NCBI RefSeq assembly: GCF_902459465.1
Contig: NC_047082.1
Span: 620,001-684,000 of the forward strand
DNA length: 64,000 bases
Direction: 5' to 3'
From: Asterias rubens
Lineage: Eukaryota
Positions within the stretch are counted from its first letter, which is position 1. Each line of letters starts with the position of its first letter. The notes below the pieces were generated by a model that searched no databases, had not been told where the DNA came from, and saw only the letters and a program-made list of their open reading frames with translations. The position numbers and the translations under genes are program-made. Positions 15,598 to 40,538 of the stretch are shown one piece after another.

Positions 15598-16881
15598 CAA
15601 TGTGATGTCATGGCTGTCCCCTGGTCCCTGGACCTTGCTTCTTCTGACATGACAAGTTGCAAAAATAATATTAAAATATTATTATTAGGCCTAGGCCTAA
15701 ATATAATGTGTAATAAAGAAGAAACGGCTACGACTCGAGTTTTAGTTTTTACTAACCTGCTAAACATGCTAAATCTGTTCTTTTTCTTATTTAATCTCAA
15801 ATCAGCTAATTAAATAATCAAATAATGATTTAAAATTGACAAATTCATAACATAAACTTAATAATTCGTTTAGTTATTTGGCCTACATTTTCAATGAGTC
15901 AGGCTGTGAATTACTTACAATTTTTGTGGTGTGTCATGCATGGTTATTTTTAGAAATGGAAAGGGAGAAAGTGTTTGTAAGCAGAAACTAAACAAAGGTG
16001 TTCAAACCCATTGTCTCACCCCACCCTTTCAATTCTTTCAGTTCATAAACTGTTGAAATCCTTGAGATTACAGTCTTTCGTTTCAAAAGATCGGCCGCCA
16101 TTTACTGAATACATTGGTACTGTATTCACGGCATGCATGCACCGTCATATGTTTTCGATCCTTCCAATGAGAGGCAGTTTTTTCTCAACTTAAGACAGAC
16201 GAACGACGTGCAAATTGTCTCAAAAAGGTAGAAGTTTAATGTCTGTAATGATGTATGAATAAATTTCTAATTATTTTTTCAGAATATCTGTATTAAATCC
16301 TTTCCTCTCTTATGGTTGGTGGATCAAAAATACATGTCAATTGAAAAAAAAAAAAGACAGTTCACAAAGTATATCAAAACATAAGTTAAACAGATTCTAG
16401 GCCTAAGCTTAATTTTGAACTTGATACATTTTTAAAATGTAAATTTTTGCTAGTGTCATCCCTTCCTATCTTTGTATATTGCTACTGTTAGTGTGACTTA
16501 TATGCCTATATAGGCTCTAAGTTTATCTTATTACTTGAGGTAACATTGGGAATTGCATTAATGTTTTATTTAGCTTCATTTACTTGCTTTTTTGTTTTTG
16601 TTGGCTTTCTTGTTGGTTGTTTTTTTATGTTGTTGGTTTTATTGAGTATTTTTTTTTTTTTTAAGAAGACAGTCAACATTAATATCAAAACACTTCTACT
16701 ACATTACAGTTAATACATAAAACAGATTCTATGCCTAAGCTTAAATCTGAACTTGATACTCTTTGAGGCTTATATATGCTTCCTTTGGGTCTTAACCTCT
16801 ACTTACTTATTCTTACTTTTATTTCAGGAATTTACTTATAGAAACTACCAAGCAGCAGGCACTACAAAATCAAGAAAAAGG

Positions 16882-19800
16882 ATGGATTGGAATCTTGACA
16901 CTTACACCTTCATAAAGAGCACACAAAGAAGTTCTATAGAAGAAGAAGTGTGTCTTGCAGTAACGGATATGCTTGCAGAGCTGTTCCAGACAGCATCTGA
17001 TGCCGCCATTAATTGTAAATTTGAACAGAATTTCTTGAGCAATGAGGCTCCCTGTGCTAAAAGGGAACAGATTTTGGCTTCAGTCAGGGAACTTATCGAT
17101 GAGTTATTCATAAAAGCATCTCGTAATTATGATTGGGATCTGGCACCCAAATGTTCATCAGAAGAACACAAGAGCAGAGATGTAAACAAGAACTGCACCC
17201 CAACACCTATGACCGCTTTTATAGACAATAATGAAGAGGGACTTGCTGATACAAAAAGATCAGAAATATCCAAGGAATGTCAAACAGCGACATCAGCAGC
17301 AGAGACTCCCAGAGATATCAGCGATATTGAAGACATCATACCAGAACATCCACTATATGAAAGTGAATTATCAGATGGTCAAATCCCAGATCAAAATTTG
17401 ATCATAATCAATGAAAAGTCTTGTTCTGACTTGCAAGAAAGTGAATCTCAACATAACACCAAATGTGATATTTCCAAGATAAGAGAGGATATGCAAAAAG
17501 AATATTTTGTGTATCTTCAAGATTCGGTTGATTCAGAAAAAATAAGTCAGACAGCAACTGACCAAGAAGAGGCTCAAAAAGACAATAGTGATGAAGTTCT
17601 GCAGGGAGGCAACAAGTCTCCTATACACGTGCCATTTTTATCTCTCAGAGATGAAGAACTAGAGGTTCCACCATGCAAGATAGCAAAACTTGATGAACAC
17701 CCATTTGGATACAGCGCTGACTTTGAATTAAACCTCTTAAATGGCGTCAAGATGTTGTTAATGCAAACTGTAGACTGTGTTAGTGAAAGTAATGAGGAAA
17801 TCCCAGTTTGCTTGGAAGACATCACCCCATCTCAAGTCAAGACCCATGAATCATCTGATGAAGATCTATTGGTTTCTGTTGAGAGTAAGACTCACACTTC
17901 CCTGTCAGCAGAGAGTGTTGATGTTACACTAAAGCAAACACTTATCACAGGTGAGGACACAAGGACGCCACAGCCCACGCTTCAAGGATGTGATTGTGAT
18001 AACAACGACACGATAAACTCAAACCATGATGATGTCAGGGATCTCAAGACACTGGAGAAGATTACAAAAGATGATGTGGGGCAATATTTGCACCTCCTTG
18101 AGAACAAAGAAGGTGTTAAGCTGCCATCGGGGGAGTGTCACACTCTCAGAAATTCAGATGTGGAGTTTGATGTATCATCTCTTCACATAGATGATAGCAT
18201 CTCTTCAAAACCATCCGACGAGAAGTGTGAATGTGATGTTACAGATGAAGTGAGGGATCACCAAGAGAAGATTACACATGATGATCTGGGGCAAGATTTG
18301 CAGCTTCTTAAAAAGCCACACGAAGATAAGCTGCCATCAGGCAAATGTCACACATTGGAAGATGAAGATATGGAGGAACATGCATCATCTTCCAAGGCTA
18401 TCATCTCATCAGAACAACAAGATGAAGACAAATATACATCTGATGTTGCAGATAGCAACCAAGAGAAAAAAATTGAAAAGGTCAATAGAAGAAATGAACA
18501 AGAGGCAACTGAAATACAAGAGGACTTAATGCAAAGTTTAAATGCTCATACTGGGGAAGATAGAGGTAACGATACTGACACACAAACCATCAATGATCAG
18601 ATGGTACCAAGCTTTCAGAGGGAGGAGGATTCTTGTTACCATGGAGATGACGAATTGTATGCAAATGATGAAGGTAAGTTGTGATTATTACTTATTGAAG
18701 AAGTTTACACCTGTTTCCATGATAGGTGTGCACATGAATGATGACATTTTACATTGCCTTGTTTGGTTTTTACTTGTATTTTTTTTAGTTTATAAAAAAA
18801 CAATCAGTGTGTTATTTGCATTAACATTATTTTACATATGAACATGTAGTAACTGCACATGGACATGGCCTTATGTAGGATGCATGGATATTTGTAAAAA
18901 CGATCTACAGTTTTTTCCCCGGATCATTAGCCTTTAAACAAATTAGCTTCACATTTTGCATACAAAGATGAACAAAGACTGCCATCTTAAAGTGTGAAAT
19001 ATTGATGGATTATAAGCTAGTTTGTGTAAAGCCAACACAGAAATGCAAGGCAGATTTGATGGCTAAATTTTTACTATACTAAATATTTGTAAAAACAACA
19101 TTGTAAAAATCTTCTTATTATTTTACTGTTTAACTTTTATTTGATCAATGTATATACTGTGACCCATGAGAGACTCCTGGTTACCATTGAATGGGTCACC
19201 CAGTTGGAATCATGAATAAATAAATACAGATAAACTACAGATAATTATTTTGAAATGCTTTCTTTATATCTCAGAACCAAAAGATGTGAAGAGGAGGAGA
19301 CTTGGCAATGACACCAAAGAGATTACTCCACAAACAAGCCCTGATCTCAGAGAATTAAAGGATCTACAGTTGACCAGTGAGGGAGCAGGGCTTGTACCCG
19401 AGTACAGCACTGCAGACAGATCGAATATGGGTAAGTAGATGACAAACCCTTTTAGAGATAAGATTTTAAGGGGTAAAGTGATACCTTGAAGAATGAATCC
19501 CAGTAAAAGCACTCGCAAGCTTTGTGGCAATTACCTTTGCTTTCAACACTCTCAGAGCAATATATTTACACTGTTCCTTAAGAAGGATTGATGAATATTT
19601 CAAGATGTGCCAAACTTATTCCTGTTATTCATAAGTAGGTCCTTGACTGCCAATGCTAGAAGGTCTGGTCAGGGCTTGAATTTCAGGGGAAGAAAATCCA
19701 CTTGATCTCAAGTAGAGTGTATGAACATGTACCTCTGGACTTTCAGTTGATGAGCCATTAACAAAAAGTTTAGAATGTACATTTCAGTGGAATTTTTTGC

Positions 19801-20924
19801 TTTTAAATAGAAACATCTGCGATTAATCATTCAATTATGAAATGTCATGTTGAAACCGAAACCTGCTTGATTGATTGGTGAGTTTTATGTCATGGCAATT
19901 AAATCAAAGCAACTTCTCAGCAGCTGAGCCGATTTCCTCTTTTTCTTGAGTTTTTGTGCTATTGAAGATCATGACAAAAACCACTGTGCCGTTTTTGTGT
20001 CAAAGGCAGTTTCCTCTTTTGGGGGGTAATTACACATTGCATTTCTGATATAAGATATATATATGAGCATTATGGGTGTGGACAATATTGTGTGAAATTG
20101 AGATATTTTTTGATACAAACAGTTGTAAGTTTATTCCCTAATATTTTCATTTCAAATTCAATAATTATTTTACTTTACCAGTTCCTGACTTGCTTTGGCT
20201 ATAATTGTACTTAATGTGTTTATTATTCTCTGTTTTTCACCAATATGGAAATGGTCATCGATTGAATTGAATTTAAATTGAATGTATATGGCTCTCTGTT
20301 CAGTTTCAGAGAGTGTCTCTCCACGAGCGACTGGCAGTGTGGTTCAGGTTGTTCCACAGAATAGCAGCACTGGAATGTTCCACTGGAGGCAAGACATAAC
20401 TTTCCAGAGTCAACTCAATAAAACAGGTGACAGTACAAAACCCAATTGTAAGTTTATTCACATAGCAAAATCTGTTACCTTGTTAAAAAAAAATCTCAGC
20501 ATTTTTGTTGGGAGTGAACAACATGCAACTGCTGTTGGCCAAACTTAATTAAATAAATAAACAGGCCTCATACTTCACTGAGGCAATGAAGGCGATTGCC
20601 TCGTTGCCCCCTGGTCACTGCCTTGGTGCCCTTGCAATGCTCCGATTGAAATTTACACCTCTTAGGGTGCCCATGAAAATGCCTTAGTGTCCTTGCCCTT
20701 TCATGACACAGATAATGATCAGTTTTGTGTTACTTTTTTAAAACACAGATCCACAAGGAGCAACAGTAGGCCCATCCCAGCAGAGACCACAACCCTTGCC
20801 TTCATGCAATCGGAAGAGAAGAGTTGGCCTCTCAAGGAGGCAGAGATTAAGCCATCTTCATAGTGTGAGCCGCCCTCCTTGTCATCAAGTAAAGATGGAG
20901 CCATCTAAGAAGCATGAAGACTGA
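16882..20924 (+). CDS. ~748-aa acidic low-complexity protein with C-terminal RAD51-interacting-like motif (RAD51AP1/RAD51AP2-like)
   Basis: Exons 16882-18673 (acceptor at 16827; further upstream coding exons possible), 19275-19430, 20304(or 20310)-20426 and 20749-20924. All are GT-AG and phase-1 compatible, totalling 2247 nt. The last exon encodes RKRRVGLSRRQRLSHLH. Confidence 0.7.
20562..20705 (+). mobile_element. CAGGCC-family MITE in last intron of the RAD51AP-like gene
   Basis: Similar to 733-908. Confidence 0.65.
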
Positions 20925-21202
20925 CTTGGAACTAAGAACAATTACAAGCAGAGTTAATTGTGAAACCAGTGATGTTCTCTGAGTCATCAGCAGGATCATC
21001 CAATATAATACTCCAAGAGGACCACAGAGTAGTGAAGTTTATAAATCGTTGTTTGTGTTTTCTCCTTTGCATTATGTTCAGATTAATAGGTAAAGATGTG
21101 CAAAAGTTATAAAAGTTCCTAAATTAAAGATGCATCCTTCTAAAGAAGCATGAATAGTAACTTGAGGACTCAGTGGTCAGACTCTACTTAATTTGTGAAA
21201 CC

Positions 21203-23837: not shown

Positions 23838-24722
23838 TCACGATGCGTTACTTGTCTTATCATTAACAAATGGCGTAATTGGTGTATTTGTAATCTCCTT
23901 GGGAGGAGACGCTTCATTTTCCGCGAGTCTTTCTTTCTTCTTGTTGACTTTCCTCAGTCTAAAATTCATATCAGCCGAAATGTACGGACTCCGTCCATTT
24001 TCGGCGTAGAGCCACTTGACGATGTACCGTTCTCTGACGCTCGGTGTCGGCGTTTGAATCTCAGGGAGCTTGAACTCAGCCGTGGACTTCGTCGGCGACT
24101 CTGTCATCTGCGCTCTGTGCATATCCCTCTGCTGCTGCTGGAATCTTCTCACATCATCATCGCAAAGAATGTGTTGGTATAACGGTGCCCCGATGGCGCC
24201 AGCGGGCTCCGTATGAGGTCGCCTGCGCCTCACCGACGGACGATGAGCTCTGGGAGTCTCGCTAGTGAGAAACTTATGCTTGGCAAAGAGTTGGCACTGA
24301 TTCGCACTTAGCTCAGGAAAGATGGGTAGCTCTCTGCTGTTTTTAGACGGCTTGTAGACCTGCATCACGGGTGGGAAGCTCGCCCTACTCGACGTATACC
24401 TTCTGGACTGGCGATACAAGATGGCTGCGGAGTTTGCATGTGAGCGATGCCACATATTGTTCTGAGCGGGTGTTTTGGATGCACCTGGTTGGTAAGGAGG
24501 ATCTCGGGCTGACTGTGCAGCAACCATGGCTTGTCTTGACATCTCCCGCATCCCTGAGATCCTAAGATCTCTCATCAGGTCTTCAGTGATGACGATGCGG
24601 TTACGGATGTCGTCAAATTTGAGTCCATGATCGATTCGTTGGGAGAGGTCTATCAAGGCTGCCATGGTAGACGGGCTGACCAGATCTTGATCCAGTGATA
24701 GTTCACGCATACGTTTCAACAT
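23838..24722 (-). CDS. Uncharacterised 294-aa basic protein, single coding exon
   Basis: 885-nt open frame, GC-richer than its flanks. An AG acceptor (TTTAGACAG) lies immediately before the ATG. No family recognised. Confidence 0.65.
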   Translation of the reverse strand: MLKRMRELSLDQDLVSPSTMAALIDLSQRIDHGLKFDDIRNRIVITEDLMRDLRISGMREMSRQAMVAAQSARDPPYQPGASKTPAQNNMWHRSHANSAAILYRQSRRYTSSRASFPPVMQVYKPSKNSRELPIFPELSANQCQLFAKHKFLTSETPRAHRPSVRRRRPHTEPAGAIGAPLYQHILCDDDVRRFQQQQRDMHRAQMTESPTKSTAEFKLPEIQTPTPSVRERYIVKWLYAENGRSPYISADMNFRLRKVNKKKERLAENEASPPKEITNTPITPFVNDKTSNAS

Positions 24723-28989: not shown

Positions 28990-30291
28990 ATGTCTTCCAA
29001 CAACAAAGGCACACAATATGACCCACCGGGAGACTCAACAAGTACCCAAGACTCAACCAATAAGAAGCTGAAATCTAACAATGCTACCCGAGCTACGCAA
29101 GACGGCAGGATGTCGAGGGAGAACAGGGTTGTTCGTGATTTGACGGAAGTGTCTTGCGAGGAGGATGAACCTGAGATTCTACCCCCAAGAGTAACAATCA
29201 CGCCACGTAAAGCATCACGTCGGATCACGAAAGTAAGTCCGAGAAGTTGCGGTGCTCGACCTCCTGAAAAAGTGACTGGCGAGAACCATTCGGGAGATAC
29301 CGAAGAGAAGTCGGGCAACTCCGAAAACCTTTCGGTAGGATCCGGTAAACATTCGGAGAAAGACGGGGTGAGTTCGGGTAAAGGGGATACTATTGTTTGG
29401 TCCACGGAGTATCGCAACAAATTACGCAAACAGGATAAAATAATGACGTCACACATCACAGCCGATAACACACACCCAGAGTGTTTTAAGCCACCTACAG
29501 CAGCCACACTTTCACGGAATCTTACTCTTGGGAAATACCGACCCAATACATCAACGATTCAGTTCGTCGTCAAGAATGAGATCAAATTCTGGCCTTCGGG
29601 AACAATTCGAGGAACGACGACAGTTGGCGATGTTGACCGAGTGACGTATTCGCGACACGCAACTCGAGGGACTGGTCGACACTCGGCACGGTTGAGGTCC
29701 GACGAAGAGCTACTCGGGTCACCTCGGACTTCGTTAACTGCCCGAAAGGGTCAAATCGTCACTAATAGATTACCACTAATCTCAAAATCCAACACTAACT
29801 CCTTAAAGTTCACCCCTGAACCCACCTTCGTCCACCGTCTCGCTACCTCCCTTCCAGGGGTCAAACTAGTCAAATTTAAAAACATTTCCCTGGAAGATCT
29901 TAACAAGCCAATCGAACGCGTGAGGAAAGCCAATCGAGGCCAGCAGTCGCCCCCCGCTTCCGATTCGTCTGATCCGACACCATCTGAGTACGAGGAGGCA
30001 ACCGGGAAGGTCCGGGCGTGGAACATACATCGAGATCGCGTAGGATCATCAGCTCAGAGTAACCCTGTGAAGAGACAAACCAGAACTGAAAGAGGACTTT
30101 GGGATTTTGGAATGAGCCCAATGCGAAGGGATATGATCAAACCATTACGGCGAGCACATCCTTTGGTTAGAGCAACCATCACCGTGGGGAACTTTATGAC
30201 GGATGGTACGGCGAGTAGAAGTGCAGCAGCTCGCATTTCCCCCCGGTGTGCTGGCGGTGTTGCCAGGAGACAAATCACTGTTCCATTTTAA
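28990..30291 (+). CDS. Uncharacterised 433-aa Ser/Thr/Arg-rich protein, single coding exon
   Basis: 1302-nt open frame with elevated GC. Probable upstream UTR acceptor TTTACAG at ~28753. No family recognised. Confidence 0.7.
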   Translation: MSSNNKGTQYDPPGDSTSTQDSTNKKLKSNNATRATQDGRMSRENRVVRDLTEVSCEEDEPEILPPRVTITPRKASRRITKVSPRSCGARPPEKVTGENHSGDTEEKSGNSENLSVGSGKHSEKDGVSSGKGDTIVWSTEYRNKLRKQDKIMTSHITADNTHPECFKPPTAATLSRNLTLGKYRPNTSTIQFVVKNEIKFWPSGTIRGTTTVGDVDRVTYSRHATRGTGRHSARLRSDEELLGSPRTSLTARKGQIVTNRLPLISKSNTNSLKFTPEPTFVHRLATSLPGVKLVKFKNISLEDLNKPIERVRKANRGQQSPPASDSSDPTPSEYEEATGKVRAWNIHRDRVGSSAQSNPVKRQTRTERGLWDFGMSPMRRDMIKPLRRAHPLVRATITVGNFMTDGTASRSAAARISPRCAGGVARRQITVPF

Positions 30292-38192: not shown

Positions 38193-40538
38193 TCAGACAC
38201 ACGTAGTGATCTCACAGCTCTCGTACTCGTGGTCGTCAGAGTCATCAGAATCCCTGCCGAACGTTGCCGTTGACGGGCTGGAGTTCATCCCGCTAAAGTC
38301 CAGTGAATCCTTGGAGATTGAACTCGTCAACGAGTCGACTTGAGACTCAGAGCTCGGTACCCTCTGCAAGCCGACTCTCTGCTGTGGGGTTGCCCGTTGT
38401 GGTGAGGAGTCCACCCTGGGCTGCGGGTCCACTCTCTGCGGACCTACCCTCTGTACGGGCATAGCTACTTGCAAGATGGGTAGTTCGATTGGGGGTCTGT
38501 TATAGGTGGCATTAGACTGCTGTTGGCACTGCCTCATACTCGATAGGGGTACCTCGGGAGGAACCTGGTCTCGATTCCCACATTGTGGGTTAATTGTCTC
38601 ATAGATAGGGGTGCTGATTTGAACTCGGCTGGTGGTACCACCTGTCTTGTTGTACCTGTTGTAACCTTTCGCGCAGCTGTACAAGAGGAGGAGCATGGAG
38701 CAAAAGAAGATACCGAGGATAGTGCCGACTCCCCCGGCAGCCAGAGCGCTCGGGAGACGCCATTCAGTGGAGCGGGTCTCGGGCTGCTTGACCTCCCCAA
38801 TTGAAATAGATTGATACTCCGGAGAATGAACAACCAAGAGGCCGGTTGCTGATGCAGTAAGTCCGGAGAGCATGGAGACCGAACATGTTATATCACACTG
38901 TGTGGCATGGTTCAGTGTGCTCAGCGTGATGGTCTGGCTGCCAGACTCGGACCAGAAGTCCTCTGGAGCCTGTTGGTCCGGCAGACAGTTGACCATCCAC
39001 ACAAATGTTGAGTTTTGAGGAGCAACCGGTTCAGTTGCACATCTGAAGTTGGCCTCACCACCAACGGATGTCTCAAAAACCTTAGGTGTTATATTCACGG
39101 TAATGTGTGTGTCTCTCTGAGATATCAAGATGCCAGAATCAGTTGCTTTGATTCCAGTTGTAGTAGCGACGTCACAAGTGATCATGACGTCATTGTCAAA
39201 CATCAAGGCTCGTTCCTTTGAAATCAGCAAAGTTGACCCTAAGTGACCTATGTTTTTTATTCCAAATGGATGATTCTCGGAGGTGGTGTTAGTAAAAATT
39301 TGCAAACTGTCAACATACCAGGTGTAAAACAATTGCTGACTGTCTTCCGTTTCAGCAAAACAGGTGAATGTGTAAATGTCTGAATCTTTAAATACACGGA
39401 GACGCTTTGGTGATATAGCAACCGAGAGTGGAAGGCTTTCTCTCAAGAGAATCCAGGCCGAGGCATTGCTAGATAGTCCAGAAGGAAGGCTTACCCCACA
39501 GGTAACCCTTGTGTTGTTTGAAGAGCGTTTTAAGTTTGGCAACCTCAAAGTTGAACCTTCCGAACCGACGTAAGATATTTCCGGAGTGTTTGTCCCATCT
39601 GTGTTGGAATGACTGAATGAGCTTTCACCTACGAACCAGGTGTATTTTACTATGTATGGAATTCCGCTTCCGAGGCATTTGAACACTGCACTTGATCCCA
39701 CCGCTGACACTGAATTCTCCTTCGTTATAACACCATTTGGTGGTTCGTTTAAAGGCAAAACTGAGCACTTACGCGGAGTCACCAAACTCGGGTGCGTCAC
39801 AAGACAAACAAATTCCCGTCCATTATCCTGTTCTTTCAACGAATATCGGTACAAGTTCGCGTTGCCAGTTGTTGAGAATAACTCTTTGTCTCCTGTGACC
39901 CAGGTTAAAGTTGGTAAAGGATTGGAAGCAATCGAGGAGATGCAAGAAAGCTCTACCAGAGCGCCTCCAAACGTCGGGTCAGCGGTGGCGATTTGAGACA
40001 CGCCGCATGACGGCACGTCTCCCTCGGGCGGCGTAACCACCGTCAGCTGCGCCTGATTGTTTTGTCCCGTTGCATAAATATTACGGATAGAGTCACCCAC
40101 TTTATATACGCAGTGAAATTTCCCTTGATCTTCATCTTGGGTGTTGTCGATTTGAAGCAAGCAGAGGTCCACATGGGACCCGTTTGAAGTGCTTACCTGC
40201 CGGTGCACCGTGGAGTACCGGCCATGGTCCCCGAGGGTTGCAACGGGGATGGTCGTCGTCAGTGCCGTACCACGGAATAAATATTCATGATTTGTGGTCC
40301 TCTCAGCTGGGAGATAGTACCACTTTAAGAGTGAGCCATCGTCCCATTTTATAGCCCAGTATAATTCCTCATCGGACGTTTTATCTGCTGCTGTACAGTT
40401 GAACTCAGCTCTTCCTCCCTCGATAGCTGTGAAGCTGGATGGCAGCCGCAAAGCGCGAATTCCAGAGGTTATGGTGAAACATTGGCACAAAATAAAAAAA
40501 ACAAGTTTGAAAATCTGAAGATAAGTGATTGTCTCCAT
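38193..40538 (-). CDS. Intronless Ig-superfamily type I membrane protein (5 Ig domains, TM, Tyr-containing tail)
   Basis: 781-aa ORF. Hydrophobic N-terminus. V-type domain (EFNC...W...EDQGKFHC) plus four further Cys/Trp Ig domains (ELSC..TW..FVC, VFKC..TW..VTC, TFTC..TW..ITC, NFRC..VW..ITC). TM segment ALAAGGVGTILGIFFCSMLLLLY. Tail ends in TTCV. Confidence 0.9.
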   Translation of the reverse strand: METITYLQIFKLVFFILCQCFTITSGIRALRLPSSFTAIEGGRAEFNCTAADKTSDEELYWAIKWDDGSLLKWYYLPAERTTNHEYLFRGTALTTTIPVATLGDHGRYSTVHRQVSTSNGSHVDLCLLQIDNTQDEDQGKFHCVYKVGDSIRNIYATGQNNQAQLTVVTPPEGDVPSCGVSQIATADPTFGGALVELSCISSIASNPLPTLTWVTGDKELFSTTGNANLYRYSLKEQDNGREFVCLVTHPSLVTPRKCSVLPLNEPPNGVITKENSVSAVGSSAVFKCLGSGIPYIVKYTWFVGESSFSHSNTDGTNTPEISYVGSEGSTLRLPNLKRSSNNTRVTCGVSLPSGLSSNASAWILLRESLPLSVAISPKRLRVFKDSDIYTFTCFAETEDSQQLFYTWYVDSLQIFTNTTSENHPFGIKNIGHLGSTLLISKERALMFDNDVMITCDVATTTGIKATDSGILISQRDTHITVNITPKVFETSVGGEANFRCATEPVAPQNSTFVWMVNCLPDQQAPEDFWSESGSQTITLSTLNHATQCDITCSVSMLSGLTASATGLLVVHSPEYQSISIGEVKQPETRSTEWRLPSALAAGGVGTILGIFFCSMLLLLYSCAKGYNRYNKTGGTTSRVQISTPIYETINPQCGNRDQVPPEVPLSSMRQCQQQSNATYNRPPIELPILQVAMPVQRVGPQRVDPQPRVDSSPQRATPQQRVGLQRVPSSESQVDSLTSSISKDSLDFSGMNSSPSTATFGRDSDDSDDHEYESCEITTCV

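Follow-up and report, generated by a model that had tools for sequence, protein, structure and literature searches.

A sea-star gene with a RAD51AP-type C-terminal peptide as a candidate RAD51-docking protein of RAD51AP2-like architecture

The stretch of Asterias rubens DNA analysed here (64,000 nucleotides, positions 620,001 to 684,000 of the forward strand of NC_047082.1; hereafter the window) carries a four-exon gene on the plus strand at 16882-20924, whose product ends in a peptide resembling the RAD51-binding motif of RAD51AP1 and RAD51AP2. The locus raises the question of whether a sea star possesses a RAD51-docking protein of this kind. RAD51AP1 (PIR51) is a vertebrate accessory factor of RAD51 and DMC1 for which a cryo-electron microscopy (cryoEM) study is available (PMC12704761), RAD51AP2 is a meiosis-specific RAD51 partner of vertebrates (Kovalenko et al. 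2006, PMC1636435; PMC8754306), and both have been described as vertebrate-specific (PMC1636435). Judging from sequence, we consider it reasonably likely that the gene encodes a RAD51-docking protein with RAD51AP2-like architecture whose C terminus binds RAD51. The product appears to be a 755-aa, largely disordered, acidic nuclear protein in which a single module, a basic C-terminal peptide derived from a short last exon, is strictly conserved. This peptide is laid out as follows.

20793-20861, plus strand: C-terminal block PLP-x-CNRKRR-[VL]-GLSRRQR-[LV]-SHLH, the most conserved part of the protein, with 20 of its 23 positions invariant.
20820-20837, plus strand: RVGLSR, the counterpart of Site-M of human RAD51AP1 (R333-L-G-L336-S-R338).
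20856-20861, plus strand: LH, the counterpart of Site-C of RAD51AP1 (L345/H346), nine residues past the Site-M Leu.

The residues required for binding have been mapped in the vertebrate proteins. In human RAD51AP1 isoform 2, the substitutions R316A, L319Q, L328A and H329A lower RAD51 binding, an effect not seen with R321A, L322S or K326A, and L1134Q, L1143A and H1144A likewise reduce RAD51 binding by RAD51AP2 (PMC1636435). The critical RAD51AP1 residues correspond to R333, L336, L345 and H346 in isoform 1 numbering; in the 2025 cryoEM study, Site-M (332-LRLGLSR-338) inserts in a pocket to which the N-terminal domain of RAD51 contributes, Site-C (L345/H346) lies on the RAD51 ATPase surface, and mutation of RLGL abolishes all activity (PMC12704761). 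D50, F92, R95, I100, T119, Q145 and D184 of RAD51 are named there as contact residues. The sea-star block consists of R-V/L-G-L-S-R, six residues and L-H, with all four critical human residues present and invariant. The hexamer is RVGLSR in Asterias and Patiria and RLGLSR, identical to that of human, in Acanthaster, and R, G, L, S and R do not vary. The Leu-to-Leu spacing of 9 (GL-SRRQRLSH-LH in the sea star) equals that of RAD51AP1 (336 to 345) and of RAD51AP2 (1134 to 1143), and the positions that differ from the human protein include the mutation-tolerant L322 and K326. The vertebrate motifs had been quoted in a first-pass annotation of this DNA; the one given for RAD51AP1 agrees with the published residues (332-LRLGLSR-338, L345 and H346; PMC12704761), while the RAD51AP2 string could not be confirmed. 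The mouse RAD51AP2 C terminus contains a conserved SRPI segment (PMC8754306), which is missing from the quoted string.

To estimate how often such a peptide arises, we used only the human protein to write the pattern R-[LIVM]-G-L-S-R-x6-L-H. A six-frame translation of the window contains one match, compared with about 1e-4 expected from composition. Because only about 0.003 occurrences are expected per whole proteome of this composition, a chance origin of the motif is unlikely. Convergence, or transfer of an exon bearing the short motif, may be the source of the resemblance. In a profile hidden Markov model (HMM) search against Pfam, PF15696 (RAD51_interact) was the only family matched by the last-exon peptide (16.7 bits, E 0.0085). 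It was also the sole family for the motif peptides of all four sea-star species examined (14.8-16.7 bits, E 0.0096-0.034), being the only one found in 3 of the 5 tested pieces and in 4/4 motif peptides.

The motif is reached through four coding exons.

16882-18673, plus strand: coding exon 1, 597 codons plus 1 base, acidic (pI 4.3) and predicted to be mostly disordered.
19275-19430, plus strand: coding exon 2, 156 nt, phase 1, carrying a basic KRRR patch.
20304-20447, plus strand: coding exon 3, 144 nt, phase 1, with the acceptor at 20304 fixed by the Asterias amurensis protein.
20749-20924, plus strand: terminal coding exon 4, 176 nt, phase 1, with the stop codon at 20922-20924, encoding the whole motif and a 20-aa tail.

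All three introns are of the GT-AG type and in phase 1, and the spliced coding sequence of 2268 nt, with exons encoding 597, 52, 48 and 58 aa, contains a single terminal stop. The first-pass annotation had recognised that the 643-aa open reading frame (ORF) at 16753-18684 represents only the large exon and is followed by three more phase-1 exons, which is borne out by canonical AG/GT sites and a continuing frame; its product length of 748 aa has to be corrected to 755 aa. The first ATG of the ORF, at 16882, is the start also used by the A. amurensis model, and a consensus donor (AAG/gtaagt) lies right after 18673. For exon 3 we adopted the acceptor at 20304, as in the orthologue models. A likely acceptor at 16826/16827 suggests an intron in the 5' untranslated region upstream of the start, and a T-rich stretch is located upstream of the gene at 16636-16676. 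In contrast to the acidic large exon, the three small ones are basic, with a pI of 10.0. The translation of exon 4 runs ...PLPSCNRKRRVGLSRRQRLSHLH, followed by 20 further residues, and the 755-aa protein terminates in ...CNRKRRVGLSRRQRLSHLH plus this 20-aa tail; RKRRVGLSRRQRLSHLH was found at 20811-20861, exactly where the motif peptide had been placed. In the sequencing-run listings, run X3 contains intron 2 besides the exons and looks like DNA, and runs X4-X8, which cover 22-33% of the locus, are absent among the listed intron holders, an absence that fits RNA and proves nothing.

Support for this gene model comes from other sea stars. The window DNA is ~92% identical to that of A. amurensis, and the NCBI protein of this species (P0001; 840 aa, 88% identical, annotated as "uncharacterized protein") joins the same four exons, the last of which is identical. 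An exhaustive HMMER search with P0001 over 1.84 billion representatives matched only sea-star proteins, including the more distant relatives P0003 and P0004, and one repeat artefact. These two relatives are encoded by LOC110980930 of Acanthaster planci (680 aa) and LOC119727107 of Patiria miniata (671 aa), both "uncharacterized" and with no precomputed Pfam domain. A kinesin-like protein that contains a long tandem repeat, P0006, was rejected as a relative, its match being an artefact caused by the N-terminal repeats of the A. amurensis protein. When mapped on their own loci, the proteins of all species revealed four coding exons separated by three homologously placed phase-1 introns, and the last exon measures 170-176 nt in all four sea-star genes. 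The A. amurensis, Acanthaster planci and Patiria miniata models share this four-exon, phase-1 structure, which supports the splicing, including that of 20749-20924 in the frame originally proposed. As far as sequence comparison goes, the splice pattern is shared by genes of four species, three genera and two orders. A locus that is not a functional gene, or last exons that are part of another transcript, is very improbable. Such a reading could appeal to the database ORF P0002, which crosses the first donor, although its source is a 2.3-kb assembled contig, and to the fact that the splice model is based on orthologue comparison. It would have to account for intact reading frames, for phase-1 introns conserved in four species of two orders, for NCBI gene models in three species and for protein-level selection on the terminal block.

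This selection is seen at two evolutionary distances. Between Asterias, a forcipulatid, and the valvatids Acanthaster and Patiria, protein identity is ~38% over the matched parts, and the codons of the terminal block show 7-12 synonymous and 2-3 non-synonymous differences. Because these codon changes are mostly synonymous, the constraint on the block acts on the peptide. In the comparison with A. amurensis, exon 4 has no differences in its 176 nt (0/176) and lies within a perfect run of 205 nt (20732-20936), divergence amounts to 6-10% in introns 1 and 2 and in the 3' flank, and intron 3 aligns poorly. The ratio of non-synonymous to synonymous substitution rates (dN/dS) in the same comparison is 0.5-1.4 for exons 1-3, with exon 1 at 0.48. 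Purifying selection is focused on the motif, whose conservation in orthologues was one of the checks named in the earlier reading and which is invariant across two sea-star orders. On these alignments, the pattern is that of a disordered protein which evolves fast and carries one essential short motif. For P0001 and P0003, the ESM Atlas models have a predicted local distance difference test (pLDDT) score of 0.36-0.38 (0.36 for P0001).

Several other islands are conserved to a lesser degree, namely two N-terminal helices, P-x-CK-x-x-KL, D-V-G-Q-x-L-Q-L and NDQMVPS...ELY, together with one in exon 3.

20345-20407, plus strand: exon-3 island Q-x-V-P-Q-x-S-S-T-x-x-F-x-W-R, ~45 residues upstream of the terminal motif.

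The exon-3 island occupies about the place of the second (WVPP) site of RAD51AP1. Its segment ...F-H-W-R-Q-D-I-T-F-Q resembles the nidogen-1 G2 strand Y-Q-W-R-Q-T-I-T-F-Q in a PDB profile search (E 0.19), probably by chance. In the large exon of Asterias, an internal duplication (~18040-18140 and ~18260-18375) contains KIT-x-DD-x-GQ-x-L-x-LL ... KLPSG-x-CHTL twice, and only one D-V-G/R-Q-x-L-Q-L island is present in the valvatid orthologues.

If the peptide is under such constraint, what is it constrained for? RKRR is a classical basic-cluster pattern of a nuclear localisation signal (NLS), and the KRRR patch in exon 2 provides a second one of similar character. The basic C terminus could accordingly be a short linear motif of another kind, such as a signal for nuclear or nucleolar localisation, a tail that binds DNA/RNA or a docking site for a kinase or adaptor, with its RAD51AP resemblance coincidental; we regard this as rather unlikely. 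An NLS would not require the invariant G, L and S or the distal LH, whereas all four proven-critical RAD51AP1 residues are matched at identical spacing, by a pattern that is rare at the level of a proteome, and within a short terminal exon, a placement shared with both vertebrate genes.

A number of observations nevertheless weigh against RAD51 docking, and some of them favour the coincidental resemblance. The strongly basic block may function in nuclear or nucleolar targeting or in binding nucleic acids, either in addition or instead. The PF15696 scores of 14.8-16.7 bits are under the gathering cut-off of 25 bits that defines formal membership of the family, and the match fades in full-length proteins and is gone in full-length P0004. 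The HMM search of the C terminus suggested in the first-pass annotation singled out the anticipated family, at a score below its threshold. Starting from the sea-star sequences, no search arrived at RAD51AP1 or RAD51AP2, and none gave a reciprocal match: peptide and two-profile searches of PDB chains returned no RAD51AP1, with only chance-level nidogen-1 matches on the exon-3 island, and a word-indexed search from the sea-star C terminus reached no vertebrate relative. Nothing outside the motif resembled RAD51AP1 or RAD51AP2 in the searches made. No similarity to the body shared by RAD51AP1 and NUCKS1 was found by HMMER over the 1.84 billion representatives, and no other Pfam family was matched. 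The large exon likewise matched nothing outside sea stars, in a single-sequence search that is hardly able to reach vertebrates for an exon only ~38% identical even between orders. There is no WVPP or FxPP site, [FWY]-x-P-P being absent from all four proteins. The ESM Atlas embeddings were uninformative, in that the neighbours are generic disordered nuclear proteins, a single RAD51_interact cluster ranks 29 for P0001 and is missing from the listing for P0003, and the 57-aa peptide by itself yielded noise. Finally, no synteny with vertebrate loci was seen, the neighbours being an unnamed 433-aa gene and an immunoglobulin (Ig)-domain gene.

The candidate RAD51-docking protein can be compared with both vertebrate proteins in gene layout and motif. 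RAD51AP1 is a 335-352-aa protein with DNA-binding regions, and the sea-star protein is acidic and 755 aa long. The two have in common the bipartite Site-M (R-L/V-G-L-S-R) and Site-C (L-H), a short terminal exon and PF15696 as the sole Pfam match. They differ in that the sea-star protein is without the WVPP site (Site-N/DMC1 site) and the RAD51AP1/NUCKS1 body and scores below the HMM cut-off. In RAD51AP2, as in the sea-star gene, a very large first coding exon without recognised domains precedes short exons, and the final one encodes the whole motif, a few residues from the C terminus; the human exons encode 1083 aa, then 27 aa and 49 aa, with the motif in the last (PMC1636435). The RAD51AP2-like architecture proposed in the earlier reading, a large acidic exon and short exons with the motif at the end, holds in this respect. 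Moreover, the critical Leu, Leu and His stand at an equal 9-residue spacing, and the body of the protein diverges fast in both. The differences are three coding exons in RAD51AP2 and four in the sea star (1792, 156, 144 and 176 nt), lengths of 976-1159 aa and 755 aa, respectively, no similarity outside the motif and no shared synteny seen.

These likenesses lead to a narrower version of the docking reading, in which the protein both binds RAD51 through the motif and is a true RAD51AP2 orthologue, from a family dating at least to the deuterostome ancestor. The alike layouts (1083, 27 and 49 aa versus 597, 52, 48 and 58 aa) and a large exon that is fast-evolving and without a recognised domain in both would fit such descent. 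The differing exon number, the lack of detectable similarity outside the motif and of shared synteny in the comparisons made, and HMMER relatives confined to sea stars speak against it, and short motifs can arise independently or move by exon shuffling. Since nothing outside the motif is alike, orthology is inseparable from independent acquisition of a short motif, and we consider orthology unlikely. Were the gene an echinoderm counterpart of RAD51AP2, the Site-M/Site-C module would be pre-vertebrate and in the deuterostome ancestor would already have been part of a disordered protein of germline type that evolved fast, and N-terminal helices containing F-x-x-A motifs (the first unit being present three times in A. 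amurensis) could provide a second recombinase contact; this proposal is a tentative one, and we give it a low probability.

For the broader reading as a RAD51-docking protein, a mechanism can be proposed. The C-terminal peptide would dock on RAD51 as shown for human RAD51AP1: R-V/L-G-L would insert in the pocket that separates the N-terminal domain of RAD51 from the adjacent protomer (Site-M), and the L-H pair nine residues on would anchor at the ATPase-domain surface (Site-C). Through such docking the remainder of the protein would be held on RAD51 filaments, which it would stabilise or modulate during recombination. Binding of RAD51 and an effect on it are what we infer from the sequence resemblance, and a meiotic role may be supposed by analogy with RAD51AP2.

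The N-terminal helices deserve separate consideration.

16942-17136, plus strand: two conserved N-terminal amphipathic helices, an old internal duplication, each with an invariant F-x-x-A.

AlphaFold2 (AF2) predicts helices at residues 21-47 and 61-93, with a block-mean pLDDT of up to ~74. The invariant columns are F37/A40/S41 and L78/F79/A82. The F-x-x-A sites lie at 16984-16995 (FQTA) and 17107-17118 (FIKA), with F and A invariant in four sea-star proteins. BRC-type motifs bind RAD51 in extended form. Both sea-star F-x-x-A motifs are inside AF2-predicted helices, and the pattern is too short for specificity; the residues may simply form a hydrophobic helix face. We set aside as unproven a role as BRC-like RAD51 sites, on account of their location within predicted helices. 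The first site in Asterias, F-x-T-A-S, resembles the BRC core printed in PMC11229353. Like BRCA2, with its BRC FxxA and FxPP motifs, and FIGNL1, the sea-star protein is long and disordered, contact with the recombinase being made by short conserved peptides in these systems, and it has two invariant N-terminal F-x-x-A motifs. It differs from them in the predicted helical setting of these motifs and in having no FxPP motif. In A. amurensis, a 123-nt (41-aa) in-frame unit at L001:10067-10452 (corresponding to ~16951-17073 of the window) is present in 3.1 tandem copies of 98% identity, and the window has one copy. The unit contains the first N-terminal helix and its F-x-x-A, and represents either a recent amplification or an assembly artefact.

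With respect to novelty, the literature examined still treats RAD51AP1 and RAD51AP2 as belonging to vertebrates and gave no account devoted to an invertebrate protein of RAD51AP type. In a paper on the genome of a hadal sea cucumber it is stated that "RAD51AP1 was positively selected" (PMC9700323), which implies that some echinoderm gene has already been automatically annotated as RAD51AP1. The earlier claim that the present gene extends the family beyond vertebrates is therefore weakened by this sea-cucumber annotation (PMC9700323). The sea-star family, unnamed in three annotated genomes, is a candidate third type of protein with the RAD51AP-type docking module, combined with a RAD51AP2-like gene architecture. 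If this is correct, RAD51AP-type docking of RAD51 is older than vertebrates or evolved twice, and a gene family left "uncharacterized" by three genome annotations could be named. Sea-star oocytes are a long-used system for studies of meiosis, and this system would gain a candidate recombination regulator. The case also shows that a functional motif of 14 residues at the end of a fast-evolving disordered protein can escape domain pipelines.

The window also contains ORFs neighbouring the gene. An intronless 433-aa ORF at 28990-30288 on the plus strand, ~8 kb downstream, matched nothing in Pfam; its identity is 95% with an A. amurensis gene and 44-46% with genes similarly placed downstream in Acanthaster and Patiria. 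The downstream synteny of this neighbour is conserved in all sea stars compared. On the minus strand, a 294-aa ORF at 23841-24722 has no Pfam match. The only Pfam domains found in the neighbouring ORFs are those of a single 781-aa ORF on the minus strand at 38196-40538, which has several Ig domains (Ig_3, E 1.6e-17; also ig, I-set and C2-set).

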